Shown: positions 40,906-61,384 of the stretch, piece by piece
Position numbering within the stretch: the first letter of the stretch is position 1
Layout of the letters: the number at the start of each line of letters is the position of its first letter
Source: Macrostomum lignano
Lineage: Eukaryota
Direction of reading: 5' to 3'
Assembly (NCBI GenBank): GCA_002269645.1
Contig: NIVC01000031.1
Location: 310,001 to 374,000 of the forward strand
DNA length: 64,000 nucleotides
Program-made: the position numbers and the translations under genes
Notes under the pieces: generated by a model
The model's input: only the letters and a program-made list of their open reading frames with translations
Told to the model about the DNA's origin: nothing
Databases searched by the model: none

Positions 40906-41418
40906 GGGTCACGGCAAATCAGGACACAGCGGGTCACGGCAAGTCAGGACACAGCGGGTCACGGCAAGTCAGGACACAGCGGGTCACGGCAAATCAGGAC
41001 ACAGCGGGTCACGGCAAGTCAGGACACAGCGGGTCACGGCAAGTCAGGACACAGCGGGTCACGGCAAGTCAGGACACAGCGGGTCACGGCAAGTCAGGAC
41101 ACAGCGGGTCACGGCAAGTCAGGACACAGCGGGTCACGGCAAGTCAGGACACAGCGGGTCACGGCAAATCAGGACACAGCGGGTCACGGCAAGTCAGGAC
41201 ACAGCGGGTCACGGCAAGTCAGGACACAGCGGGTCACGGCAAGTCAGGACACAGCGGGTCACGGCAAGTCAGGACACAGCGGGTCACGGCAAGTCAGGAC
41301 ACAGCGGGTCACAGCAAGTCAGGACACAGCGGGTCACGGCAAGTCAGGACACAGCGGGTCACGGCAAGTCAGGACACAGCGGGTCACGGCAAGTCAGGAC
41401 ACAGCGGGTCACGGCAAG
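40906..41418. repeat. 25-bp minisatellite (GGGTCACGGCAAGTCAGGACACAGC)n
   Basis: About 20 near-perfect copies. Confidence 0.97.
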
Positions 41419-42660
41419 CCAAGCGGTGGCTGTATATTTAACTGAGAACTCTTGAGTAAGCACTGGACTTCCTGCTCCAACAGTTGCTAATAAAAAGTCA
41501 GTCCAAAAATCAAATACAAAAATCAGAGCCGGAAAAAGCGCCAAACCGGTGGCTGAAAAATGTGAAAAATTCTCGGCAACAGAAAATCTGGAGTAGACAT
41601 TGAGCAGTCTGAGCAGATTGGGGAAATTGTGATTGGCTTTGTGCCAGAGTTTCAAAATCAACATTGATCAGCTTAAAACTGAAGTAGCACTCGAGTCAGC
41701 ACAAAAATGTCTCATTGATTAAAAGGAGCAACCGGTAAAACAAACTCGGCAGTCAAAAAAAATTAAATCGGGGCCGAATAATAAAAACTGGCAGGAAAGT
41801 TGATTACACAAAGGATGTAATTAGATAAAGAAACAAGGCAACCGGTTAAACAAAATGGACGCAAGTATCATGAAATTTTTTGTCAAAAAGTAAGCCTCTG
41901 AGGTTCAGGTTTAAGTTAAGCTCCGCTAAAACAAGAAACAGGCCACCAAGTCTTATAAAAGTTGGGTTCCAAAAATATTTGAATTTTCACTGCCGACAAC
42001 TGCCCAACGCCATTGCAGTTTAAGGATAAACAAATGATTAATGCCTCAGGTTCATTGGAAGACCCAATTGATATGCTGATCAGCTCAGATCCGCTCCCTC
42101 ACAGCCCGTCGCTCTCGCAGTCACGATGAGGCACTCAGGAAGCTGTGCCGCAGCAGCTCCGCGGTGTCCGCTCGCTTCCTCGGGTCATAGTCTACGCACC
42201 TGAGGTAGAAGTCCTTCAGGCCGGCTGAGAACCCGTCCGCAATCCGAGGCATCTCCTGCCTTCTATCCCTCAGAATGCCAATATTTACACTTGGCTGGTT
42301 CCTATCAGGAGGCTGCATGGCCGTCATCTCAAACACGGTGCAGCCGAAGGCCCACACGTCGGTCTTGGCTGAGTACGGAATCGAGTCACCCTCGCCCATG
42401 AACAGCTCCGGAGCCATGAAGTAGGTGGTGCCTTTCGGTCCAAAGCCTGTGCTCAGATCGCAGCTCTTCCCGACCTCCTTGGCCAAACCGAAGTCGATCA
42501 GCTTGATGACGCCCTCGTTAGTGAGCATCACGTTGTTGCAGTTCACATCGCGGTGCAGGATGGTGCCGTCTGGGTGGCAGTGCAGGAACTTCAGGCCTGA
42601 GCAGATCTGCAAATTGAGCAGTTTTGAGCAGTCATGAGAGTGCATCTATCCATTCTGGAT

Positions 42661-42912
42661 CCCACCCACACTGACCTGATCTCACACTGATCCCACACTG
42701 TATCCTATGTCTGATCCCACACTGATCCCACACTAATCTCACACTGATCTCACACTGATCCCACGCTGATCCCACACTGATCCCACACTGATCCCACACT
42801 GATCCCACATTGATCCCACACTAATCCCACACTGATCCCACACTGATCCCACACTGATCCCAAACTCATCCCACACTCATCCCACACTCATCCCACACTC
42901 ATCCCACACTCA
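42661..42912. repeat. 11-bp minisatellite (CCCACACTGAT)n in a kinase intron
   Basis: About 22 copies. Confidence 0.93.
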
Positions 42913-43626
42913 CCCCACCCATGCCAGGCAATGCCACAGAACCCAAAGACGCACCTGTCTGGAGAAGTCCCTGACCCCGGACTCCTTGAACGGCTTTTTC
43001 TGACGCTCCATCAGCTCAAAGAGGCTGTGACCCGAGACCAGCTCGGTGAAGATGTACAGCCCATCCGACTTCTGCTCGCACTTGAGGAACTGCAGAATGT
43101 TGGGATGCGAGAGTCGCTTGAGGATCTCAACTCCCCGCTTCTCCATCTCGACGGCTTTCTGCAGCTTCCCCGATTGGCCGGTGCCGCTCAGGGGCAGCAC
43201 CTTGACAGCCACCGTCTGGTTGCGGTCTGTGAGGGCCTTGTACACCTCACCGAATCCGCCACGGCCGATGAGCTGCTTCTTGTTGTCCTGTAGGATGAAG
43301 TCCCAGTCAGTGAAGCTGGGGTCCAGCTGCTTCTTGGTGCTGGAAATGAGGTGAAGGAGTTCGATAAATATTGTCTTGCTTGGGGGCGCTATGAGGAGGT
43401 TGGGGGCGCCATGAGGAGGTTGTGGCATTATGGGGAGCTGCCCTGACAAATTTGTGACGCCCTCGCTTGACTGCGGCGCTGCCGAGAATTTCAGGGCGCC
43501 GATCATCAAAGCGCAATGAATTTTCGGCTAAAATGGGGTCCAGTTGCTTTTTGGCGCTAGAAAACTTGAGTTGAAGGAATTCGTTGAATTTTGTGTTGCT
43601 TGGGGCTTTCTGAGTATTTTGGGACT

Positions 43627-43790
43627 CACCACCCTTCTGCGTCACCACCCTTCTGCGTCACCACCCTTCTGCGTCACCACCCTTCTGCGTCACCACCCTT
43701 CTGCGTCACCACCCTTCTGCGTCACCACCCTTCTGCGTCACCACCCTTCTGCGTCACCACCCTTCTGCGTCACCACCCTTCTGCGTCACC
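43627..43790. repeat. 16-bp minisatellite (CACCACCCTTCTGCGT)n
   Basis: About 10 perfect copies; the same family occurs at 52289-52503. Confidence 0.95.
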
Positions 43791-44059
43791 AACAGCCGGC
43801 GCCACACATTTACAGCGCGGACTCACCGAGTCTCCTCAGGCAGTCCCCCCTCGGACGGCCCAGGCGGCCTGACGCGCTCCCGAGCTCGCGGGCGGGGACG
43901 CGGAGCTGAAGCGCTGTGGGAAGCGATGAGGCGAGTGACTCCCAAATATGGGTTTTTGCGAGTGAGCCCGTTAAATATATCTGGGTCGCTATGGCAGCAC
44001 TTGAACTCTGCCAATGCTTTGTCTGCCTGCCTGACTGCCTGCAAATGGAACTCTGGGTG

Positions 44060-44310
44060 GCGCCATGGGGAGATCGGGAGCGTCAAGGGGAGGTTGGGGG
44101 GCGCCATGAGGAGGTTGGGGACGCCATGAGGAGGTTGGGGACGCCATGAGGAGGTTGGGGGCGCTATGAGGAGGTTGGGGGCGCCATGAGGAGGTTGGGG
44201 GCGCCATGGGGAGATTTCAAGAGCTGCCCTGAAAATCCGTGACGCCCTCGCTTGACTGCGGCGCTGCTGAGAATTTCAGGGCGCCGATCATCAAAGCGCA
44301 ATGAATTTTC
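44060..44310. repeat. 19-bp repeat (GGGGCGCCATGAGGAGGTT) plus ~90-bp block, duplicated at 43380-43525
   Basis: GAGCTGCCCTGA...GTGACGCCCTCGCTTGACTGCGGCGCTG.GAGAATTTCAGGGCGCCGATCATCAAAGCGCAATGAATTTTC is present in two adjacent introns. Confidence 0.85.
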
Positions 44311-46277
44311 GCCAAACAATATTTTCAGTATTTTTAGTGTCAGGCAGCAGTTCTCAGTCAGAACTCACCCAGCTGAGGCGGCAGGCGGCGCTGAGCTGCC
44401 AGCGGGAGGCCGAGAGGCTTCGAGCCGCCGCTGCGTGGAAGAAATCCAGGCCCGCTTTGCTGACTGGGCTGTGCGGCACCAATCAATCTCAACAACATCA
44501 ACCGGTGTTTCGCCATCTTTGTTCTTCAAGCTGAACATTTTGGCTCCGATTTGGTAAAAAATGAACTGAAGAGAGTCGACTGGCTGATGCTTAGCGGCCA
44601 AATGGACGGCGGTGTCACCTTCTTTGTCAGGAACTGTGAGACAGTCGCTGCCGAGCTCCTTCACCAGCCACTTCAGATTTGAATTGTCAGACTTCAGAGC
44701 AGCAAAGTGAAATGCTGTTCTATCCCACAGTCCTCCTTTCAGCCGAAAGCAGTCAGTTCCGATCTGTCTCTTGATCCACTCCAGCGACTCGATGCCCTGA
44801 TGCTGAGCGGCCAAATGGACGGCCGTGACACCGTCTTCGTCAGGAACTGTGAGACAGTCGCTGCCGAGCTCCTTCACCAGCCACTTCAGATTTGAATTGT
44901 CAGGCTTCTCAACAGCATAGTGAAATGCTGATCTATTTCAAAACCCCTTCAGCCGAAAGCATTTAGTTCCGATCTGTCTCTTGATCCACTCCAGCGAGTC
45001 GATGCCCTGAAAAAGAGCAGCTAAATGGACGGCCGTGTCACCGTCCTTGTCAGGAAATGTGAGCCAGTTGCTGCCGAGCTCCTTCACCAGCCACTTTAGA
45101 CAAGATTCGCTTTTTCTGTTCATAGCGGCAAAGTGAGCGACTGTCTGTTCCAATCTATCGACAATTGTCAAACTGCCTCTGCCTCCCCTCTGTTTAACCA
45201 GCTCCATCCAAGATTCGTCCTGATGCAGGGCTGCCAAGTGCACTAGAGTCTCACCATCACCCCTATTATTTCTTTGTGTCAGACAGCCGGATCCGAATCT
45301 GTCAATTAGCAGCTTCAGGCACGACAATCTCACCGGCTTGCAGGCCACGTGATGGGCCAGCGGCATTTTGCGACGCTCTTCAAAGGGAAAATCTTGCCTG
45401 TCGAACGCGCCCACCTCCAGCCAGCTGTTGCTGCCGACTTTACCGCACAGTCGTTGCAGCTCCTCGCTGTCTCCAGCCTCCAGCGCCGCTCTCAGCTTTC
45501 GCTCCATCTCCATGGATACACTCCCAGTGTTTCCCATTGCCGGCTTCTCCTAGCAGCGCTTCTCTGCTGATTTGCTGTCTGCCGCAGCTGTTCCACACGG
45601 CTTTAAACTGAGTGCTTTGCTCTTCTTCAAGCGAATTTGCCCTGCCAGCTCAGCAGCAGCAGCAAAAGTCCCGCTGTCACGGACTGAAATCTCTGAGCTC
45701 TCCCTGTGCAGAGAAATTTGTTTAAATGGACTGAGGCCGATTCTCTTCTCTGACCCAGTGGCTGTGTTTGAGGCCTGATTGGGTGCCAGGGGGTCCGGCA
45801 GCTGCTCTGCTCAGCGGGTGAGAGATGCAGGAGCAGTGAGATGCTGCGAGCTCTGCTGAGTTAAACAATGAGAGCTGACTGTGGCTGCTGCGTGCTCGGC
45901 ATAGCAAGTGCAAATTGTTTTTAGAATGCAGTAGGCATGAGAGAAGAGAGAAGAATGGAAGATATGTATTGCAGAGAGGACTTAAATAGGCTTTAATGCT
46001 AGCACAAACTTAAAGCTAGCTCGTATAGCTATGGGTTGTTAATCATGAGCAACGTAGTATAGGACGCTGGACGATCGCTGGTTGTGAAATGCATCATCGA
46101 GGTGGGAATCCTATATACTAAAAATGAAAATCTTGCTTGCTTGCTTGTAATCGAATATTGACCATATTTCGCCTTTAAAGTGCAGCAACAGTTTTGACTT
46201 AGGCAAGGACTTTTTAATCAGTTAAATAATCTTGTATTGTGAAGCAAGTGGTTTATCTGACAGAAGTCCTTGAGCAA

Positions 46278-49200
46278 CTTGACTTACTTGACTTAGCTGC
46301 AGGGCGGTCCGAAGACGCAGCGGGGAGGCGAGCGTCGCCCATTCCGCTAATCCCTGAAAGACCCGCATAGGCTAGGGCGCGGGGCCGGTCAGGGAGGTCT
46401 GCCGGTCCTGTCTGCAGCGTTGTCTTCGGTGGGGAAGACGGAGGCTCGCTTGGTGGCCCGGAGGAACCGGATGAGCCGTGGGATGTTCTCGGGCCGGCAA
46501 ACGTCGTCCAGGGACGGGTTGGGCCCGAGGTGGTTGAGCCGGTCTCGGTTGAAGGCCGGGCAGTAGCAGACGAAGTGCTTGGCATCTTCGTTCTCGAGGT
46601 TGCAGTAAGGGCAGAGTTCGCTCCGGCGGGCACTTCGGAGGAAACAATGCCTGGCAAAGCAACCGTGACCTGTGAAGGTCATAGTGAGAGCGCGGATATC
46701 TTTTCGATTTTGGTTCAAAAGGATTCTCCGCAGCTTGAGGGACGGATTGGGCACTGCCGCACGGGATTGGCGGCAGTTGGAAATGCCATCCCATCTGCGT
46801 AGATGCAGGACGTCCGCCCAATCGTTAATCTTACGATTAATGACCGTGGCGGGGATTGGGGCCAGGGGCACGGGGCCAAGGAGCGAGCCAGAACTACCCG
46901 CCTTGGCGAGGGAGTCGGCGAGCTCGTTACCTTTGAACCCAGCGTGTCCTGGGATCCACGTGAGCCGGACGGTGTTCCTCCGAGCCAGCTTGTTGAGCTG
47001 CCCGATACAGTCGCGGACTGTTCGGGAGTTCGTAGTGGTGTGACACAGGGCCTGCAAAGCGGCCTGGCTGTCAGAGTGGAAGAAGATTTTTCTGTCCTTG
47101 AAGTCCCTGCAGTGGAGCTCAGCTGCACACGAGCTGATGGCAAGGAGTTCATTCTGGAAGACGCTGGAGAGTCTGCCAGTGTGTTCGGCGTGAGTAGCGA
47201 TCACGCGGCCATTGATAAGGATGAAGACTCCAAAGCCGGATAAACCGTCTTTGGAGGATCCATCAGTGAAGCAGTGAACCTCCTGAGGGGCCCAGCTGTC
47301 GTTGGCGTTCTCCCTGGAAGGGATAGTGACCCCAAAGTGTTGGTGGAGATTTAGGAAGCGCGGCTTAGCGTCCGAAAGGACAGCCGCACTCCCTCTCTCC
47401 TCCAGAACTTTAAGGCACAGGTCAGAGTGCGGCAGGAGCATGCGCTTCGCCATCGCTCTTTGTGGCTTGAAACTAACACCAGTCTCGATGAGCCGGCTGG
47501 TGGTTTTAGCAGCCTCGGGACGGACAAAGATGTCCAGAGGCGGGAGGCAAAAAAAGGCGTTGAGGCCGTCAAAGGGAGCAGAGAGCGGGGCATTCAGGAT
47601 CATGCGGCACGCACGTCCCTGCACCTTTTTGAGGGCTTCGTGGCAGGTTTTAATCTGCAGGGCGCTGGTCCAGATCAGCCCGGCGTAAGTAACGGCCGGT
47701 CGGACCATTGCGGTATAGATCCACCAGAGCCGCTTCGGGGTGAGGCCCCAGGTGGTGCCGACGGCTCTGCGCAGCTTCGCAAAGATCGCGAGGGCTTTTT
47801 TGGTCTTGGCCTGAACGTGGGTAGACCAGCTCAGCCGGTGGTCCAGCGTAACGCCGAGACACTTGGTTTTTTTGCAGGATGGGATTTCCACCCCGTAAAG
47901 CTTCAGTGGGCGAATACGCCAGTTTACCCTGCTGGTGAACATGATTACGACAGTTTTGGTCTCAGAGAGCCTGAGGCCGCACCTGTCCGCCCATTGTTCA
48001 GCAGAGTGAATAAAGTTTTGCAGAAGATCCCTAAGGGTTTCGGGTGACGGTCCGGATGCCACGGCTGTGACATCATCGGCGTAACCGACCTTAAGGATGG
48101 GGTCAAGATGGCTGTCCTGGAGGAGCTCATCGATGACCATGTTCCAGAGAACTGGAGAGAGGACATCGCCCTGGGGGCTGCCTTTGCAGACGGTTACCGT
48201 CCGTTAGTGGCCCAACAGGTGTGCGGTGGCAGTACGGTGGCTGATCATATACATGATCCACCGGGTGAGGTGCGAGTGGGTTCCTCTAGCACGTAGAGCT
48301 CTGTCAAAAGCCTCAAAGAGGACATTATCAAAGGCTCCAACAATGTCGAGGAAGACAGCGAGAGCGTAGCCATTGCCAAGAACGGCTTTCTCCAGCATGT
48401 CAACCAAACCGTGAAGCGCGCTCTCCGTGGACCTGCCTGCCCAAAAGGCGTGCTGGCTCTCACTGAGCGGCTTGTTCTTCAGTTCCACAGAGAGGAGGCG
48501 CCAGAGCACCAGTCTCTCTAACAGCTTCACCAGTGAGGAGGTGAGGCTAATTGGTCTGAAGGATTTAATGGACCGGTAGTCTGGTCGGCCGGGCTTGGGG
48601 ATAAAGACCACCTTGGCCTCGGTCCAGGGTTTCGGAACAAAGCCGAGAACAAGCAAGCTTTCAGAAGCCGGCAAAGGTTTCGCAGGAAACCGGCCCAATT
48701 CACCGCCTCCCGCAGGAAGGCTGGCACAACGCCGTCCGGTCCTGGGGATTTGAAGGGTTTGAAGGAGGAGACTGCTGTAGTAACGCGGTCCTCCGAGATG
48801 ATTGAGTCAGCCAGTACGTGTCCGCCCACTGAGTGATCAGGGGGGTCGGGCCTGGCTGGCTCGTTCGGGAAAAACGCTGTCAGCATCGCTTCCTGTGTTT
48901 CTCCTGGATTCTCAGTGAGTGAGCCGTCGGCTCTCTTGACTGAGGAGAGTTTGGACATTTTGTCCAGGGTGAGGGCTTTAACGATTCTGGAGGTGGGGCG
49001 GGAGCCCTCAAGTTCCTCACAGTATTCGCGCCACTTGTTGGTTTTGGCGTTCCTAACCTGCCTCTTGAACTCGTGGATAGAGTTCAGGTAGGCGGTTTGG
49101 TCGGCCGGGTTTTTAGTTTTTTGGGCCCTACGGTGAAGCCTTTTGGCTCTGCGACGGAGGTCGCCAAGCTGCGGGTTCCACCATGGGGCCGACTGTTTGC

Positions 49201-50458
49201 CTTTATATGCCTTTAGGGGCATGAGGCTTCGAAGGCAGCAGTGAGCGAGTCCGTAAGTGCGGCCGCAAATTCATCTGCTTCCTCGCAGGTGTTGATGGAG
49301 ACTGGAGTGCTAGTGCAACGATAGGTCTCCTCCAGGGCAAGCCTGAAGGCGGTCCAGTCGGTATTCCTAGCATTCCGTTTCCAGTAAAGCTGGCCTGCGT
49401 TTCGGGCGCTGGCCAGCGTGAAGGAGATGAACTTGTGATCGGAGAGGGACGCCTCAGGGAGCACCCGCCACTCCCTAGTGCTCTGGAAGAGCCTGGGCGT
49501 GGTGAGGGTGGCATCCAGCACCTCCGATTGGCATCCGTTATTGAAGGTAGGGGTACTACCCGAGTTACAGAACTCAAGGGTTGTAGTAGCAATATAATCC
49601 AGGAAGTCTTCACCTCTCTGGTTTATATCAGAACTGCCCCAGTGGGTGTGGTGGGCATTGATGTCGCCTGCCACAAGCAGCTCATAATTTCTGGTGGAGC
49701 AGAGCTCGACCAGTGTGACAAGCTCTACTGGGATCATCTCGCCGACGCCCGGTAGGTAAACCGAGGCGATGAGGGTAGTCCTCCCAGGGAGTATGTCTTC
49801 AGACTGGATGACACAGATGTCCCTGGTGGACAGGTCCGATCTGAGCCATTCGTTAATAGAACTGGACACCATGATGCAGGATCTTGGTGCCAGGTTTCCC
49901 TCCCGGGTGTCAGCGGTTAAACACTGGTAGCCGGTGGGGACATGTTGGGGACTGCCCCTTAGCGTCCAAGGTTCCTGGATAAGGATAATCCCTGGCGTGT
50001 ATTGGTCAGTGTGCTTCAAGAGGTTGACTGAAGCAGCAATGCTGTGCTGCAGGTTGACCTGCAAGCAGTGGATGCCCTGGGAGAAAGTCATGTCTACTGT
50101 CCAGGGGAGGAGAAGAGCAACTCATTCTCAGCCTCATCGGTGAGAGTTGAGTCGCCAATTTCCATTGGCTCAGGCTCAGCCGCCTCCCCAGCCGCCGCGG
50201 AGGCGGACACGGCGCCCACGGCAGGTGAGTCACCTAGCCGCGCTACACCGCCCTCCTCCCCAGCGACTGGGGTACGGCTGCTGCCTTCGCCTTGCGCCCC
50301 GCCGTCGGGAGACTGAGCTCGGCCGGCAGCGTCCTCCTGGTGGTAATCCCACCAGTTGGAAGGCTGAGCCGTGCCGTCGTTCAGTTCCCTCGGCTGGCTT
50401 TCAGTGTCTTTGCGAGCGGCACGAGTCTGCTCGAGGTGAAGTCTCAGAGACCCCCAAC
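46278..50458 (-). mobile_element. Non-LTR retrotransposon (APE-RT-RNase H-CCHC; LOA/R1-group-like), 5'-truncated in probable ORF1, ORF2 disrupted
   Basis: ORF2 starts at 50091: QVNLQH..ILIQEPW..GDINAH..SDH (APE), YRSIKSFRPISL, PQGDVLSP, YADD (RT), FTDGS, ELLAI, SDSQAAL, WIPGH.G..GNELAD (RNase H), CPYC...H...C. There are two frameshifts (~49220, ~48660) and one in-frame TAA (48204). The 3' tail is (TAAGTCAAG)2. Confidence 0.92.
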
Positions 50459-51699
50459 TCTCAACCACATCAGCCGGTGTTTCTCCCTTGTTGTTCTTCA
50501 AGCTGAACATTTTGGCTCCGATTTGGTAAAAAATGAACTGAAGAGAGTCGACTGGCTGATGCTTAGCGGCCAAATGGACGGCCGTGTCACCTTCTTTGTC
50601 AGGAACTGTGAGACAGTCGTTGCCGAGCTCCTTCACCAGCCACTTCAGATTTAAATTGTCAGACTTCTGAGCAGCAAAGTGAAATGCTGCTCGATTCTGA
50701 AATTCTTCCTTTCAGCCGAAAGCAGTCAGTTCCGATCTGTCTCTTGATCCACTCCAGCGACTCGATGCCCTGATGCTGAGCGGCCAAATGGACGGCCGTG
50801 ACACCGTCTTCGTCAGGAACTGTGAGACAGTCGCTGCCGAGCTCCTTCACCAGCCACTTCAGATTTAAATTGTCAGACTTCTGAGCAGCAAAGTGAAATG
50901 CTGCTCGATTCTGAAATTCTTCCTTCAGCCGAAAGCAGTCAGTTCCGATCTGTCTCTTGATCCACTCCAGCGACTCGATGCCCTGATGCTGAGCGGCCAA
51001 ATGGACGGCCGTGACACCGTCTTCGTCAGGAACTGTGAGACAGTCGCTGCCGAGCTCCTTCACCAGCCACTTCAGATTTGAATTGTCAGACTTCTGAGCA
51101 GCAAAATGAAATGCTGTTCTATTCCACAGTCCTCCTTTCAGCCGAAAGCAGTCAGTTCCGATCTGTCTCTTGATCCACTCCAGCGACTCGATGCCCTGAT
51201 GCTGAGCGGCCAAATGGACGGCCGTGACACCGTCTTCGTCAGGAACTGTGAGACAGTCGCTGCCGAGCTCCTTCACCAGCCACTTTAGACAAGAACTGCT
51301 TTTTCTGTTCATAGCGGCAAAGTGAGCAACTGTCTTTCTTGATCCATGGACAATTCTCAAGCAGCCACTGCCTCCCTTCTTTTCAACCAGCTTCATCCAA
51401 GATTCGTCCTGATGCTGGGCAGCCAATTGCACTGGAGTCTTATACCTATCACATCTATCTGTCAGACAGCCGGGTCCGAATCTGTCAATCAGCAGCTCCA
51501 GGCACGACGAACTCACCGGCTTGCAGACCACGTGATGGACCAGCGGCATTCGAAGCTCTTCAGAGGGAAAGTCTTGCGTGTCGAAGCCGCCCACCTCCAG
51601 CTTGATGTTGCTGCCGACTTTACCGCACAATCGCTGCAGCTCCTCGCTGTCTCCAGCCTCCAGCGCCGCTCTCAGCTTCCGCTCCATCTGTGTTGCCAT
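50459..51699 (-). pseudogene. Ankyrin-repeat paralog 2 (starts MATQMERK), truncated after ...ETPADVVE and joined to the LINE
   Basis: High nucleotide similarity to 44480-45750. It has three 213-bp double-ANK units, a 1-nt frameshift near 50712, and no kinase exons. Confidence 0.85.
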
Positions 51700-52288
51700 G
51701 GCTACACTGCTTCTCCTAGCAGCGCTTCTCTGCCGATCTGCTGTCTGCCGCAGCTGTTCCACACGGCTTCAAGCTGAGTGCTTTGCTCTTCTTCAAGCGA
51801 ATTCGCCTGCCAGCTCAGCAGCAGCAGCAAAAGTCCCGCTGTCACAGACTGAAATCTCGGAGCTCTCCCTGTGCAGAGAAATTTGTTTAAATGGACTGAA
51901 GCCGATTCTCTTCTTTATCTTCAAGATCAGCTGTATAGGTTAGTTCAACTTTGACGCACTTGTATTAGGGAGACAGAGGGCAGTGTAAAACGATAGCGCA
52001 GTTGGTCGATATGTCGATGTGGAGCAGCGCCGCTGTACGATAAGCGGAGTTCTAAATAAGATAAGCGGGAGAGTAGCCTTATCAGTCTTTCCCAGGGAGA
52101 GTGTGCTTGGTTTTTAGTTCGTTCTGGCTCGCAGCCGAAAAGAAAGTCTTTTATTGCGCGGACTCAGTTTATTGCATAAATCTTCAAAACAGTCCACGGC
52201 GCCCTCCAAAGTCCGAAACCGCGTGTAACTCGCGTCTCTGATAAGGTATAAAATCTACCCTGTTTTCTATATATTCTGGGTCTTTAAT

Positions 52289-52503
52289 GTCACCACCCTT
52301 CTGCGTCACCACCCTTCTGTGTCACCACCCTTCTGCGTCACCACCCTTCTGCGTCACCACCCTTCTGCGTCACCACCCTTCTGCGTCACCACCTTTCTGC
52401 GTCACCACCCTTCTGCGTCACCACCCTTCTGCGTCACCACCCTTCTGCGTCACCACCCTTCTGCGTCACCACCCTTCTGCGTCACCACCTTCTGCGTCAC
52501 CAC
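52289..52503. repeat. 16-bp minisatellite (CACCACCCTTCTGCGT)n, second array
   Basis: About 13 copies. Confidence 0.95.
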
Positions 52504-53032
52504 ACTTCTGCTTTGATGGCTCTGTACGCAAGTTATCGAGGTGCTACTATCAGACCAAAGCAAGGCAAGGGTGTATGGAGCATCAAATACATTCAAATGA
52601 CACAGTAGAGCAGTTCAAGGATGCTGAAAAACCCGTACGAGTCCGTCGACCACAGAGACGATGCATGATGCAGAAAAATCAGCCAGGAAGGTGTATCCAG
52701 GAAGTTCGCAGCAGGCTGCAATTCCTAGTTAAAGTGGATGGCTACTCAGGCTGCTGGATAAACGTCAGGAACTTCGAACAAAACGCTTCGGTTCACAAGC
52801 TTATCAATGCGTGCTGTGACCTATTTTGTCCGATAGAAGTACCGGAATCGTTCTAGTCAGACTCGGGCCTCAGTTCAGAGCCAACGCCTTTGTCAATTTT
52901 CTGAAGAGCTGGGGGGAGTTGAGTCAAGAGTCTCATATTGCCTGACTATCACCAAAGCAATGGAAGGGCGGAATCTGCAGTTAATTCTGCTTAGAATATT
53001 ATCAGAGGATGTTGCCCATACAGCAGCCTGGC

Positions 53033-53161
53033 CTTGACTTAGCTGCAGGGGGCGTCCGGCGGATGCAGCGAGGAGGCGGAGGAGACCGCCCATTCCGCTA
53101 GAAAAAAATATGGAACGCTTCACGAATTTGCGTGTCATCCTTGCGCAGGGCCATGCTAATA

Positions 53162-53192
<31 letters not shown>

Positions 53193-53209
53193 ACTTCCGA
53201 AGCAAGTAC
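53033..53209 (-). mobile_element. U6 snRNA-LINE 3' end chimeric retrocopy
   Basis: U6 (53209-53102) is followed by 69 bp homologous to LINE 46287-46349. Perfect 12-bp TSD CAGCAGCCTGGC at 53021-53032 and 53210-53221. Confidence 0.92.
53102..53209 (-). ncRNA. RNU6: Full-length U6 snRNA copy (retro-pseudogene)
   Basis: GTACTTGCTTCGGAAGTACATATACTAAAATTGGAACGATACAGAGAATATTAGCATGGCCCTGCGCAAGGATGACACGCAAATTCGTGAAGCGTTCCATATTTTTTT. The ACAGAGA box and AGC triad are intact; AAGATT is changed to AATATT and one C is lost in GGCCCC relative to the canonical sequence. Confidence 0.97.
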
Positions 53210-54899
53210 CAGCAGCCTGGCTGGTGTTCCCCACGTCTATCGAAGTCGATATCAAATATGTGCTTTATTTTAATTACAGCGACAAATAACGACGTCATAC
53301 GTCGGCTGAACGTCGGTGTATTGTAAAAGTACATGTCTATTATCGACGGCATTGAACGTCGATGATATGCACCAGGCGACTTAAGAATGAATGCATGGAT
53401 CGAGAATTACCAAGACGGACAATCCCAGACCTGAGGATCAAAGGTCACTGGAGAGACCTCGAGTTAATGCCATCTGGAGAAAAATATCCCGCCAGTTCGG
53501 TTTCAGTACAGCCCACTGCTGCAGTCAAATATAATTTGTTTATTTAGTACACAAGGAACAATTATGACTCGTGAAGGGTAGATGGTGCAGATAATGCACT
53601 CGTTCCGTGAGATATCCATGGCCCCGATATAAAGACTAAGTGCTGAGAGGCAGGGCCGGCAAATAATCTAAAAACAACTTGGCTCTCTATCAGAGAGGCC
53701 CATACAATTAGTAAAATGCAGGTGACAACAGCCAGATCTCTTAAAGGACGGAGCTTGATTTGCGCATCAGTTCAGAACTTTTGAGTGCTTGTGATAATTT
53801 TGATCTGTAGTGTAATAGGTACAATATTCCCTACATGTAAACTGAATGACCATTGAATATGATTTAATATACTACTTTCATCTCACCTTTAATTTTATTG
53901 GAACTGTTGATTCAATTTTTTTGTTTGGTACAGTCTGCAATAAAATCAATTGTTTGATTAGTTTGAATTTTTTCAATGGTCTGAAGACAAACCTCATTCA
54001 CACTGTCAAAGCCATCAAATCACATAACCGGATGTACAAACAAATAAAAGTTGATGTACAAGCAAGGACAAGCCCTGGTGTACAAGACGTGAATTTTCAG
54101 TACTTCTAAGTGGATAGTATTTGAGCTGTAGACCGCTTCAGTGAATTCGTATTTATACTTTTTTGGCTGGACCGGCGTATCTATAAAACTGACAAATGGA
54201 TCAAATAAAATACACGAATACGCTAGTACAGCTAAAATACGCACCATAATTGTACTGAGCTTTTATTTGACGCTCTACTGATAGTAGAAATATAAGGAAA
54301 ATAATCTGAGAAAAAATCAATTGATAATATGTTTAATACTTGTATGCTGTCCTACTCAACTAATCAGCCAGCGGGCAGTTCATCAAGAGTAACGGCAGTT
54401 TCTCCGCCACGATAACTCTGAGTAGGCAGCACGCAGCGACAAGGGGGATCCATGCGGTGTTGAAAATCTTGGTAGCGCCACTGCCGTCCTGGCAAAGCTG
54501 CAGAAAACTGGGAATCATTCCCCACGATCAAATTGTAATTGGGGAATTATCAAATTCACTGAAATGGTAGCGATTTGTCAAGCATTATGGTATATTTCAT
54601 GCAATTAAATTATAATTAAATAAATGTACCAGAGAGGTGTGAAAACTTGGTATTACGATTCAAAGAAAGCGACTTGTAAGTTAGAAATTATGGGTAAATA
54701 TTTTAGCAATCATTTTTTGATAGAATTCCTGATATGACAGCTGGATTCTAAAGAACAAGTTGGCAGAAAATAATTGTGAGTACGCTCGTATAAATGGGCA
54801 CGCACTTGTGACTTAACAGAAAGCATTTCATTAAAAATTAAATGGATCTGTATCTTTGTTGCTAAGTCAAAGTCAGAGAATTTTGAATCAAAAAAAGCA

Positions 54900-56665: not shown

Positions 56666-59373
56666 CTCTTCGTGCTCTCGGTCGTCGCTGGCTGTCTCGT
56701 CGTGCTCTCGGTCGTCGCTGGCTGTCTCTTCGTGCTTTCGTTCATCGCTGGCTGTCTCGTCATGCTTTCGTTCATCGCGGGCTGATCTTCGTGTCGTCGT
56801 GTGTCGCCAGCTGGTCTTCGTGTCTTCGTGTCTCGCCGGCTGGTCTGTCGTCGTGTGTCATCGGCTAGTTGAGTTTAGAATTTTTGGGACTGACTATTTT
56901 TTCGATTTCACTGTTTGATAACAACGTTACCATTGATACTCAGTTTCACTCACTATTTTGATACTAACTGTTTGCGTAGATTTATCGTTTTTCATTTTTT
57001 CGCTATTTTTTCTTCTCGTCTTGGTCTTTTCTGCCGTGCTGAATGGAAGATCTAAAAAAGGATCGGGCAGTTTTGCGTCGTGCAGTGTCGTTGCTGGTTG
57101 ACAAGGTACAGCTTGTGGTGGCCGCATCAGGTGCTGGAAGTTCGGAAGATGAGATGCAGAGTCTGTTAAACGTGCTGAGTCTGAAGAGGTCCGAGTTGTA
57201 CCAAATTGATCAACAAATCGCTCGGTTTTTCGTTGACGAAAATGGAGAAGAAAGTGACAAGCTTCAAGAGGAAGTTGAACGAAGTAATGGCTACATGCTG
57301 AAACTGGAAGGAGCTGCTACGGGGCTGAAGAGGCTGCTGGACCGTCTTGCTGAATCGAGGAGTCGCGCGGCTTTAGCGTCACAAACGGCTGGTTCTGCTG
57401 GGTCGAGTCGTTGCAACGTAAAGCTGCCAAAACTCACTCTGCCAATATTCGATGGTAGCGATGCAACTCAGTGGCCGGAATTCAGCGGCCAATTCGATGC
57501 TGCCGTTCACAAGAACGACTGCCTATCAGATGTTGAGAAGTTCAGTTACCTCTTGGGTTGCTTGCGTGGTGAAGCTCGGCGTTGCGTCGACAACCTTCAG
57601 CTGACAGGACAAGACTATCATACTTCATGGGAGTTACTCGTAGATCGGTACGGCTCAAAAGAAAATTTAGTCCAACACTTTATGAAGAAGCTAGAAGCCG
57701 TGAAGTGTCCTTCCGACTCTACCCAATCGCTTCGAGCCTTCATTGGAGTTGATGGCTGCGAACGAGCTTGCTCAAGCCCTCGACGAAGTCCGCGCTGAAT
57801 ATCCGCATGGCTTCATCACCTGCTGGAGCGACAGCAGGGACGTTTTGTGGTGGCTCAAGTCGACACAAATTGTGGAAGCCATTCATTCAAAACAGAGTTT
57901 CCAACATTCGAACAGCTGTGGCACCGGAGAAGTGGCGGTTCTGCCCTGGGAGGGACAACCCCGCAGACATTGCGACCCGACCAGTCGTGCCAGGCGCATT
58001 CGATTCATCGTCCCCTTGGTTTCGGGGTCCTGAGTGGCTGTCTCTGGATTCCTCGCTCTGGCCGGAGCAACCTGTGATAGGCGACCAAAGCTCAAATCAT
58101 CGAGAAGATGCACACAGCTGCGCAGTCACACAGACGTCAACGTCAGAGGTACAATCGGCACGCATCCACTCCATCATCGAGGTGCAGCGCTACAATTCCT
58201 TGACTAGATTGCTGCGGGTCTCAGCGTGGGTTCTCCGTTTCATCAGCATTTTAAAACGGACGCGGCAGGCTACGACTGTCGAGCTGACGTCGGCAGAGCT
58301 GTTAAAATCGGAGGAGTTCTGGATTAAATCGCTGCAGTCGCGTGACTTCGAAGCCGACATTCGCAGTCTTCGCGACAGCACTGCCTGCACGCAGCTTAAC
58401 AAGAACCTCTCGCTTTTCTTGGACTCGAAAGGTGTTCTTCGTTGCGCAGGAAGGCTTGGAGACACTCAGCTTTCTGACGACACAAAGTCTCCGATTCTCT
58501 GCCCATTAGACCCCAGCTTCCAGACACTGCTCATCACGGATGCGCATCACAAAGTCGGTCATGGGGGAGCCTCCGCGACGTTAGTCCAACTTCGTGAGCG
58601 ATTCTGGCTACTGAAAGGGCGACAGAAGGTAAAATCTGTGCTCAAATCATGCAACACATGCATTCGATTGCAAGGGTTGCCGTACCATATTGCACAACCA
58701 GCACAGCTGCCGGCATCCCGTGTTACGGCGTGTCGTGCGTTCCAGCATGTTGGCCTCGATTACTGCGGCCCCCTCATCTACCGCAGGGGGGAGGATGACG
58801 GCCAACATAAAGCCTACATTCTATTGTTGACCTGTACTAGCACACGAGCAGTGCATCCCGAACTCGTCACTGACTTGACAACGCAGTCATTCCTTCTGAG
58901 CCTGAGACGCTTCTGTGCCCGCCGAGGTGTACCATCGATTATCTCTGACAACTTCAAAACCTTCCATGCGGCGGCCAGGCTACTGGATGCAGAAGAAGCT
59001 CCATTGCGGACTCAAGCAGGTCAAGATTTTCTGAGCAGCCGCCGAGTCACCTGGACATTCATTCCCGAGCGAGCTCCATGGATAGGAGGCTTCTACGAGA
59101 GGCTGGTCGGCGTAGTGAAATCAGTGCACAAGAAGACAATCGGAAGGGCATTCCTGACCGTCGAGGAGCTGTCGATAGTAATCTGTGAGACGGAAGCGGT
59201 TGTAAACTCAAGACCGCTTGGCTTTGTGTCTTCCGGCGAGCAATCAGAAGTCATCACACCTGGTCATTTCCTCGTTCTGCGCCGCCTGAAAAAGAACCAG
59301 AGGACGAAGCGGAAGTTTCAATGGTCCTGCCGCTTCCTGAAAGGCTCCGAAAGTCCAGACATTTGCTGAACAA

Positions 59374-60586
59374 TCCGTTGGAAAAGTTATGCATCTGCAG
59401 AGGCATAAAAGGTGAGCGGGGTGCACAAAAGAGGCACTTTAGTGGCCTATTTCTTGCATGTTTTGGAAATGCACCTGAGTGCACCTTTTATGCCTAAATG
59501 TCACCAATATTTTTGAAAAGAGGCATGAAAGGTGTAAAATCGGTGAAGTGGTCAGGCAGTAGGTGAATTCTCAATTCTGATTGGTTGCGGCGGTAGGGGC
59601 AGTAAAGGTGCGTAAGGGGCACTGGAGGTGCACAAAAGGTGAACACCAGGCTCACAAGTGAGGCACAGCAGGTGCAGGAAAGGTGCTGAAGGGGCGCAGA
59701 ATGTGCACGAAAGGTGAATTAGAGGTGCATAAGGTGTACATGTGCGGCGTAAATATGTATACAGGTGCATTTCCAAAACACGCTCAAAATAGACCCCTAA
59801 AGTGCCTCTTCTGTGCACCTCGCTCACCTTCCATGCCTATGCACGAATTAACGCATTAATAATTCGTAACAAAAAATTAACTGAGAGTTACATACTCGTA
59901 CATTGCACGCACAGATTGAACATAGAAAAGCTTTATTTACACCTATACTAATCGCTGCTATCCCCTTCCTGATCCTGACAAACCACGAAAGCAAACATTT
60001 CCTGTACTGATAAGTTTTAATGACTTTCAAATACTCAGGAAAAGCTCCGAAAAGTGATGAAAAGGCTTGCATTAGTGAGGAAAAGTTTCCAATAGTGAGA
60101 AAAGATAGTGAGAAAAGCGAGAAAGAAGTGAGAAAAGTGAGAAAATAGTGAGAAAAGCAAAGAACTTCACCAGTTGAAACTTTATCGCCCCTTGCATTGC
60201 CTCTACGCCTAAAGTGCCCACTGTGCATCTTTTATTCACCTTTCGTGCCTCCATTGACCATTGCACACTGTACACTTTTTGTGCACTCCACCGAAGCGCA
60301 CATTTTTTCACCTTTCACTCCACCAATGCCCCCAATTCCTACTTTGTTCACCTTTTGTGCCTCAACGCACACTGTGCACCTTTTATGCACCTAAATCCCC
60401 TACGACACCTGTGCCCCTAACCGCCTAGTTCGTGCCTTAAATTCACCTTCTGACCCTGCAGAGGCACTCAGGTGAACAAAAGGTGCACAAGTGGCACAAA
60501 ATAGGCATAAGAGAGGCGAAAGTGAGGCAGAAGGTGCAAAACTCTTCACCTTTCATGCCTACTTTAAAAACTCAAAATCCAACGGG
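59374..60586. mobile_element. Non-autonomous CACTA/CMC-like element inserted in the BEL integrase C-terminal region
   Basis: Ends (T/C)CCGTTGGA...TCCAACGGG with a 3-bp TSD CAA (59371-59373, 60587-60589). Removal restores HLLNKFWKEWQAQY. It carries many AAAGGTG/CACCTTT subterminal motifs. Confidence 0.85.
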
Positions 60587-61384
60587 CAAGTTCTGGAAGG
60601 AGTGGCAAGCACAGTACATTCTGGCCCTCCGTGAGCGATCATCCAAAGACGGTCGAACATCGAATCGGGAAATACGAGTTGGCGACGTAGTGTTAGTGAT
60701 GGATGCCGGATTACCAAGACTTCAATGGAAGCTTGCGGTTGTCGAAGCTGTGCACCAGGGTCGCGATGGAGTCGCCCGCTCATGCCTACTGCGGGTGGCC
60801 AGTTCTCAAAGTGGTCGAGCTGCTACGCATCTTCGACGGCCAGTGAAGTTGCTGGTACCTCTGGAAGTCTGACGTGTCGTTAGTGGTTTTTTACTCGGCT
60901 GCTGGCTGCGTCTATTCGGTTTTCCTGTGTTCTTTTGGTCATTTTGCTGGTGGCGTTCGGTCGGTGGTCGTTCGATGTCGGTGGCTGTGTGGCGGTCGGT
61001 GGTGGGTCAGTCGGTTGGTTGGTGGTTCTCAGTCGTTGTTGTTCGGTGGTCGGTTTTGGTTGCGGCACGTTGGTTGTTTTTGTAGTTGGTGGTGTTTGTT
61101 CTTACAGTCGCTTTAAGTTTTGTTTTTTTCTTCGAGTCGGTTAGTTCTTGTTTATGTGGTTTGTGTTTTCTGTGTTTTTTCTCTTTCGTCGGTGATTGGT
61201 TTGCGTTTTTTCTGGTAATTTTGCAGTTTATTCACATTTGGTTGATTTTCGTGCTTTTTCGGTTTTTGTTTTTTTCCGCAGTCCGATGTTTTAGCGGCGG
61301 CAATTAATATTTGTTTTTTCTACCTTGTGTTACTTTTCCTTTTGTGAAATGACCTTGACCTCAATCGATCAGGTCATGGGGGAG

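Follow-up and report, generated by a model that had tools for sequence, protein, structure and literature searches.

A probable U6/LINE chimeric retropseudogene with a non-L1 partner in the flatworm Macrostomum lignano

Introduction

Chimeric retropseudogenes in which the U6 small nuclear RNA (snRNA) is fused to the long interspersed nuclear element (LINE) L1 were reportedly described in mammals by Buzdin in 2002 and by Garcia-Perez in 2007. Here we describe a unit of this general type in the flatworm Macrostomum lignano (Platyhelminthes, Macrostomorpha), composed of a full-length U6 and of the 3' end of a non-L1 LINE. It lies at 53021-53221 of a 64-kb stretch of contig NIVC01000031.1 (assembly GCA_002269645.1, positions 310,001 to 374,000), which was analysed as a whole and is called the window hereafter. 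An earlier note, made from the sequence of the window alone, had pointed to the unit as a chimeric retrocopy or as a candidate U6-headed short interspersed nuclear element (SINE). The analysis upholds the first of these proposals: the unit is probably a U6/LINE chimeric retropseudogene, processed and without function, which arose by target-primed reverse transcription (TPRT).

The U6/L1 chimeras of mammals, as presented in Doucet 2015 (PMC4476161) and Moldovan 2019 (PMC6789731), share with the flatworm unit a full-length U6 with oligo-T fused head-to-tail to the 5'-truncated end of a LINE, a target-site duplication (TSD) of 10-20 bp, and a promoterless and inert state. The flatworm unit differs from them in its partner, which is a non-L1 element bearing an RNase H and a TRAS1/R1-like endonuclease, and in its 3' end, which carries no poly(A) but derives from a structured 3' untranslated region (UTR) ending in a 9-nt repeat unit.

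Partners other than L1 are known from vertebrates. In Doucet 2015 (PMC4476161), 40 U6-L2/Mon-1 chimeras are reported from the platypus, and U6 chimeras with L1, L2 (U6-L2 Acar), RTE (U6-RTEX-2) and AnolisSINE2 from the lizard Anolis; the conclusion drawn there is that U6 chimeras are a general property of non-LTR (lacking long terminal repeats) retrotransposons. The chimeras of platypus and Anolis with non-L1 partners are the closest functional analogue of the flatworm unit, having likewise a "stringent" non-L1 partner and a short LINE segment that ends in a simple repeat, and with them the principle is already established. Differences concern the U6 part, which in the platypus is mostly 5'-truncated and accompanied by TSDs of 1-9 bp, whereas the flatworm unit has a full-length U6 and a 12-bp TSD, as well as the clade of the LINE, which is L2 or RTE in the vertebrate cases reported there and belongs to an R1/I/LOA-like group in the platyhelminth one.

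The earlier note had regarded a U6 chimera with a non-L1 LINE as a new extension of the pathway. This view does not stand: since U6 chimeras with L2 and RTE were already reported by Doucet 2015 from platypus and Anolis (PMC4476161), the flatworm case represents a taxonomic and clade extension and not a new pathway. No invertebrate U6/LINE chimera or U6-headed SINE was found in the literature, the coverage of which was incomplete. The locus adds the Platyhelminthes to the range of U6/LINE chimeras, with an RNase H-bearing LINE whose endonuclease is TRAS1/R1-like as a further type of partner. This lends support to the idea that U6 is favoured by non-LTR retrotransposition in general, or through the chemistry of the U6 3' end, and that the preference is not a peculiarity of L1.

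Two further systems deserve comparison. The SINEU elements of crocodilians (Kojima 2015, PMC4494074) resemble the flatworm unit in several respects: their 5' part derives from an snRNA, they lack an internal promoter, contain an oligo-T and were presumably born by template switching; they are, however, multi-copy elements with a shared internal structure and without a LINE partner sharing their tail, whereas the flatworm unit is found in one copy and its LINE partner is present. A U6 head is not described among SINEU (PMC4494074). The WEIRD-MGL chimeras (MINE) of Magnaporthe grisea (Gogvadze 2007, PMC2104539) are likewise fusions of a small RNA to a non-mammalian LINE, flanked by direct repeats of 10-20 bp, but their 5' part comes from the WEIRD RNA, stated there to lack homology to U6.

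Anatomy of the U6/LINE unit

The unit lies on the minus strand and comprises, from its 5' to its 3' side, the following parts:

53210-53221, minus strand: TSD on the 5' side of the element, GCCAGGCTGCTG, an exact 12/12 repeat
53102-53209, minus strand: full-length U6 retrocopy (Rfam RF00026) from the +1 G to T7, starting with GTACTTGC and ending with CCATA and T7
53108-53102, minus strand: run of seven T (T7) that closes the U6 part, from the alignment
53101, minus strand: single C at the junction, not attributable to U6 or to either known LINE copy (T in both)
53033-53100, minus strand: LINE 3' terminus of 68 nt, TAGCGGAATGGGCGG...CTGCAGCTAAGTCAAG, with two predicted hairpins and one terminal TAAGTCAAG unit
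53021-53032, minus strand: TSD on the 3' side of the element, GCCAGGCTGCTG, exact repeat

Excluding the two 12-bp repeats, the insert measures 177 nt. The U6 part reads GTACTTGCTTCGGAAGTAC...GTTCCATA followed by T7, the LINE fragment, in the same orientation, reads TAGCGGAATGGGCGGTCTCCTCCGCCTCCTCGCTGCATCCGCCGGACGCCCCCTGCAGCTAAGTCAAG, and the 30 nt across the junction are CCATATTTTTTTCTAGCGGAATGGGCGG. The earlier note had described a 69-bp LINE match joined directly to U6: the LINE origin of this segment is upheld by the comparisons presented below, but its length is 68 nt plus one unassigned C, and the match, at 80% identity with small indels, is not exact. The junction C could be a non-templated nucleotide, a variant of the source copy or a later mutation.

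The perfect 12-bp duplication claimed earlier is borne out. The two copies of GCCAGGCTGCTG are identical at all 12 positions and abut both ends of the unit, no other perfect copy exists in the window, and a 12/12 match touching both ends would occur by chance with a probability of about 4^-12. Between the end of the LINE part (..CAAG) and the start of the TSD no microhomology is evident beyond one G.

The U6 part is complete from the 5' G to the oligo-U, as had been proposed. When the whole window was compared with Rfam, the sole match above threshold was to RF00026, over model positions 1-105 (53209 to 53104 on the minus strand), with 104.8 bits against a gathering score of 44 and E=3e-26. 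The 5' stem GUACUU/AAGUAC is fully paired and lineage-specific with respect to the Rfam consensus, and because this species-type stem is intact the source can be taken as a native U6. Two changes affect the otherwise invariant core, namely AGAAG to AGAAU and the loss of one C from GGCCCC, and both are consistent with a pseudogene of slight age or with a source gene that was itself a variant.

U6 promoters are external (type 3). Upstream of the +1 position of this U6 there is no TATA at -25 to -32, where only the TSD and the integrase remnant described below are found; of the two promoter elements, TATA and proximal sequence element (PSE), it is the TATA that was judged here.

These boundaries bear on whether the unit arose in one step. 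Two sequential insertions, a true U6 gene beside a LINE fragment, or an artefact of assembly would each yield a U6 next to a LINE end without a single retrotransposition. Nothing specific speaks for any of them, apart from the fact that a single assembly is available. On the other hand, one perfect TSD pair encloses U6 and tail together, with no internal duplication inside the unit; the U6 starts exactly at its +1 G (53209), directly beside the TSD, within an integrase remnant and without promoter elements; and a misassembly would not create a target duplication. Such origins are therefore extremely improbable.

The target site

The sequence that received the unit is an old integrase:

52690-53009, plus strand: frameshifted remnant of a retroviral-type integrase core (Pfam rve), the insertion target, recognised in a stitched translation

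The integrase peptide was stitched from the flanks after removing the insert and one copy of the repeat and after bridging the frameshifts. It matches Pfam rve with E=2.3e-6 and 28.2 bits, under the curated cut-off of 32.6, and has the foamy-virus integrase as its best match in the PDB. It also shares 32% identity over 97 aa (E=1e-10) with the integrase of a PR-RT-RH-IN (protease, reverse transcriptase, RNase H, integrase; Gypsy-architecture) polyprotein in another M. lignano locus, a 22.7-kb stretch of NIVC01000558.1 in the same assembly (GCA_002269645.1), termed L004. The recognisable integrase sequence stops at 53009, leaving 11 nt between it and the TSD, and the remainder of the element to which the integrase belonged is absent from its surroundings. 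Of the "dead Gypsy integrase" named earlier as the host site, the dead integrase is thus well founded, while the attribution to Gypsy, on 28.2 bits and 32% identity, is plausible and unproven. The integrase of a BEL/Pao element that lies downstream in the window (57768-59369) was considered as a counterpart of the remnant and discarded, as there is no similarity between the two. The uninterrupted site expected before the insertion is GGGGAACACCAGCCAGGCTGCTGTATGGGCAAC.

The LINE partner and its relatives

The only other tail of this kind in the window belongs to a resident LINE, for which the following features were found:

46278-50091, minus strand: ORF2 (second open reading frame) region of the resident non-L1 LINE, frameshifted, with Pfam Exo_endo_phos_2, RVT_1 and RNase_H
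49213-50091, minus strand: apurinic/apyrimidinic endonuclease (APE) domain, Pfam Exo_endo_phos_2
48204-48698 and the start of 46389-48140, minus strand: reverse transcriptase (RT), Pfam RVT_1
46389-48140, minus strand: RNase H (Pfam RNase_H) and C-terminal Cys/His motif
46278-46352, minus strand: 3' terminal module, ending in (TAAGTCAAG)x2, 92.7 bits with the covariance model described below

The order of domains is APE, RT, RNase H. Among solved structures in the PDB, the APE is nearest to the endonucleases of TRAS1 (E=9e-10) and R1Bm, with no match to the L1 endonuclease at E<=0.01. The APE and the RNase H support a non-L1 element similar to the R1/LOA/I group, in agreement with the APE-RT-RNaseH LINE of the earlier note; that a LINE lies nearby is likewise correct, its distance being 6.7 kb instead of the 7 kb given. 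The best homologues of its ORF are M. lignano proteins with 71%, 60% and 54% identity, followed by the next named taxa at no more than 36%, and an exact look-up returned no identical record. The stop codon lies at 46389 and is followed by a 3' UTR of about 110 nt that ends in the two terminal repeat units. No TSD was found for the resident LINE.

The tail of the unit is 80% identical, with small indels, to the end of the resident LINE, and the 16-mer CTGCAGCTAAGTCAAG occurs in the window only in the unit and in this LINE end (46287-46302, minus strand). A second relative is the JGI metagenome contig 3300038379, Ga0394873_0189874 (L001), which carries at 638-2520 a LINE whose protein is 58% identical to that of the resident one. 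Directly after its stop codon stands a 3' module of the form TTAGCGGAATGGGCGG..CGCCTCCTCGCTGCATCCGC..CCCTGCAGCTAAGTCAAAGTAAGTCAGTAAGTCAAC, to which the tail is 81% identical, while the ends of the resident LINE and of L001 are 78% identical to each other. Because these two independent LINE termini match the tail up to and including the terminal TAAGTCAAG unit, the tail is a genuine LINE terminus, and the recurrence of the tail as a LINE 3' end in other copies, on which the earlier note had made its reading depend, was found in both. Since the tail is only 80% identical to it, the resident LINE is not the source copy but a relative, of the same family and of a different subfamily. As an observation apart, the presence on L001 of a LINE of the same family points to flatworm-like DNA in the environmental sample from which this contig comes.

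A covariance model was built from the three tails (chimera, resident LINE and L001). Its matches are limited to the resident LINE end with 92.7 bits, L001 with 92.4 bits, the tail of the chimera with 81.4 bits (E=2e-22) and, weakly, L003, a more distant LINE contig, with 19.8 bits. The three tails have common stems, with loops that vary in length and sequence. RNAalifold predicts two hairpins on them, with one compensatory pair and one G-U change: in hairpin 1 (GGCGG-loop-CCGCC) the closing pair changes from G-C to A-U and the loop is variable in both length and sequence, while the G-U change lies in hairpin 2 (GCUGCA...UGCAGC). L003 and L002, another more distant relative, likewise end in a GC-rich motif resembling a hairpin, behind which stand simple repeats, (GAT)n and (TGAG)n; 3' ends of "stringent" LINEs usually look like this.

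The divergence of the tail leaves room for a variant of the same chimeric event, in which the tail would have been copied from a short non-autonomous partner, such as a SINE or a deletion derivative with the LINE tail, and not from a LINE mRNA. The tail is indeed about 20% off both known LINE copies and its hairpin-1 loop, TCTCCT, is its own; moreover, U6-Mon-1 in platypus and U6-AnolisSINE2 in the lizard offer precedents (PMC4476161). However, a short partner of this kind was seen in none of the sequences examined, and an unseen LINE subfamily explains the divergence of the tail equally well, because the two known LINE copies are themselves separated by as much. A short partner is accordingly an unlikely source.

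Formation of the chimera

A full-length U6 with oligo-T, a 5'-truncated LINE end in the same orientation and with its own terminal repeat, and one TSD enclosing both argue for a single TPRT event, and together with the lack of a promoter context they sustain the chimeric retrocopy that had been proposed for this locus. The U6/L1, U6/L2 and U6/RTE chimeras are described as having this very architecture (PMC4476161). By analogy with the chimeras of L1, L2 and RTE, an RNase H-bearing, R1/I/LOA-like (non-L1) LINE would have nicked the target within the old integrase remnant, and its RT would have begun TPRT at the 3' end proper to the LINE, with the two predicted hairpins and the short terminal repeat. 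The cDNA would then have passed from about 68 nt of LINE into a complete U6, up to the 5' end of the latter, and a staggered cleavage of the second strand would have produced the 12-bp duplication. For the joining of the two RNAs, two routes may be considered. In the first, the RT would switch from a broken or short LINE template to the oligo-U end of U6; in the second, an RtcB-type ligation would link U6, through its 2',3'-cyclic phosphate, to a LINE fragment with a 5'-OH, and the ligated RNA would be retrotransposed afterwards. The sequence is compatible with both and does not discriminate between template switching and prior ligation. The extra C and the T7 are compatible with non-templated addition during the jump onto an oligo-uridylated U6, or with a variant source LINE. 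A ligation route from U6 to LINE RNA is described in PMC6789731, where the major human form of U6 is given as ending in five U.

Several points weigh against the TPRT-made chimera as the explanation of this unit. The chimera is known from one locus only, and the junction C is without explanation. The resident LINE, at 80% identity, is not the source, and no source copy came to light. Folded as a single sequence, the tail reaches energies no better than those of shuffled controls, so that both hairpins, with one compensatory pair among three sequences, are suggestive only. Finally, the empty orthologous site was not recovered: L004 is colinear with the window over 34.4-45.9 kb, at 87-98% DNA identity, but its homology stops at the ankyrin gene, before the insertion site.

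The chimeric copy is inert, and from this one copy no functional consequence for the host is evident. M. lignano is amenable to RNA interference and transgenesis, and for this reason template switching and RtcB ligation become testable against each other outside mammalian cells.

Is the unit a SINE?

Instead of a single chimera, the unit could be a member or the founder of an amplifying, SINE-like family with a U6 head and a LINE tail, which would be propagated from one or a few master copies in Macrostomum by a stringent R1/I-like LINE through the retained LINE 3' module. Some features agree with such a family. The tail is common to the unit and to its partner LINE, and its 68 nt keep the two predicted hairpins along with the terminal repeat, so that nothing a stringent LINE would need is missing from them. 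Furthermore, SINEU headed by U1 or U2 exist without an internal promoter and with an internal oligo-T (PMC4494074).

The copy number argues in the opposite direction. In the window, neither the covariance model, run with filters off, nor a permissive Rfam rescan (E<=1) detected a second U6, a further U6 fragment or another copy of the tail besides that of the LINE itself. In 43.5 kb of M. lignano DNA neither the U6 nor the tail recurs, which leaves a single copy overall in the roughly 107 kb of Macrostomum DNA covered. With just one U6-tail unit and one LINE tail per 64 kb, and neither of them in the 43.5 kb, a hyper-abundant family is unlikely. When collections of metagenome, genome and viral contigs were scanned by pattern, the U6/tail junction and the tail by itself gave 0 matches each; the host genome is in none of these collections, so this result is uninformative about the host, and the scanned metagenome collection lacks L001, the contig that carries the tail. 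A search with junction peptides, in which the four spanning frames were concatenated, yielded 243 matches, all of them spurious U6-only ORFs and none extending into the tail. One spurious U6 read-through ORF of 204 aa in public metagenome assemblies (an ENA contig) also shows the L1 ORF1 domains PF02994 and PF17490, and presumably represents a U6 beside L1 in contaminating mammalian DNA.

The structure of the unit points in the same direction. The T7 is a terminator for RNA polymerase III (Pol III) placed between head and tail, and U6 depends on an external promoter, for which no TATA stands upstream (-25 to -32). Had the junction coincided with the beginning of the conserved 3' module, a SINE would have been favoured; this was ruled out, as the conservation among LINE copies extends about 8 nt further upstream of the junction position (CAGGGRTTAGCGG) and the junction is therefore off the module boundary. 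By the standards with which Kojima separates a SINE family from a sum of independent chimeras (PMC4494074), what was seen includes no shared internal structure, no master copies and no lack of a LINE partner. Overall, the U6-headed SINE put forward earlier finds no support in one copy per about 107 kb with an internal T7 terminator and no upstream promoter, and membership of such a family must be regarded as improbable. If it were nevertheless true, this would be the first class of SINEs with a U6 head, spread despite an internal Pol III terminator, and its transcription could occur, for example, by read-through or by RNA polymerase II, as proposed for SINEU. As a single chimera, the locus illustrates concretely how the birth of a SINE from a stringent LINE could begin.

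Genomic surroundings

Upstream of the ORF2 of the resident LINE lies an ankyrin-repeat segment, here called A (51916-50450, minus strand). In a comparison of 50094-51916 (minus) with 44059-45912 (minus), A is 88-97% identical to the 5' part of a downstream ankyrin-kinase gene, B, and it is 92% identical to the M. lignano paralogue of that gene (L004, 7980-10437). It starts about 165 nt downstream of the point where the homology between B and L004 starts, and it ends mid-exon; from there, the frame stays open across about 360 nt of unique sequence until a stop 2 nt before the ATG of ORF2. No TSD was found for the ankyrin-plus-LINE unit, and the ankyrin ORF has no similarity to ORF1 of the related LINE contigs. 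Segment A and the LINE could be a second chimera produced by this LINE family, made of the 5' part of an mRNA and of a LINE, or a captured ORF1, or the result of a segmental duplication.

At 42121-43509 lie protein-kinase exons, which share 86-94% identity with a large kinase family of M. lignano. Between the ankyrin and the kinase exons of the ankyrin-kinase gene, at 43546-43901, there is a tandem array with a period of 16 bp (GGTGGTGACGCAGAAG-type). An array of the same type recurs at 52210-52581, upstream of segment A, and is 95-99% conserved in L004 (11032-11650).

Further downstream, at 57043-60872 on the plus strand, lies the remnant of an LTR retroelement of the BEL/Pao type, with ORFs for a DUF1759 gag-like protein, a protein containing Integrase_H2C2 (57768-59369) and DUF5641 (60483-60872). 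Within it there is an inverted repeat of 93 nt (59396-59488 and 59751-59843). The first part of the window (1-41500) is dense in long minisatellite arrays with periods of 8, 16, 20, 23-29, 33, 35 and 40 bp, several of which are colinear with the M. lignano scaffold at 88-98% identity, as in the case of 40906-41761 with L004 13542-14306.

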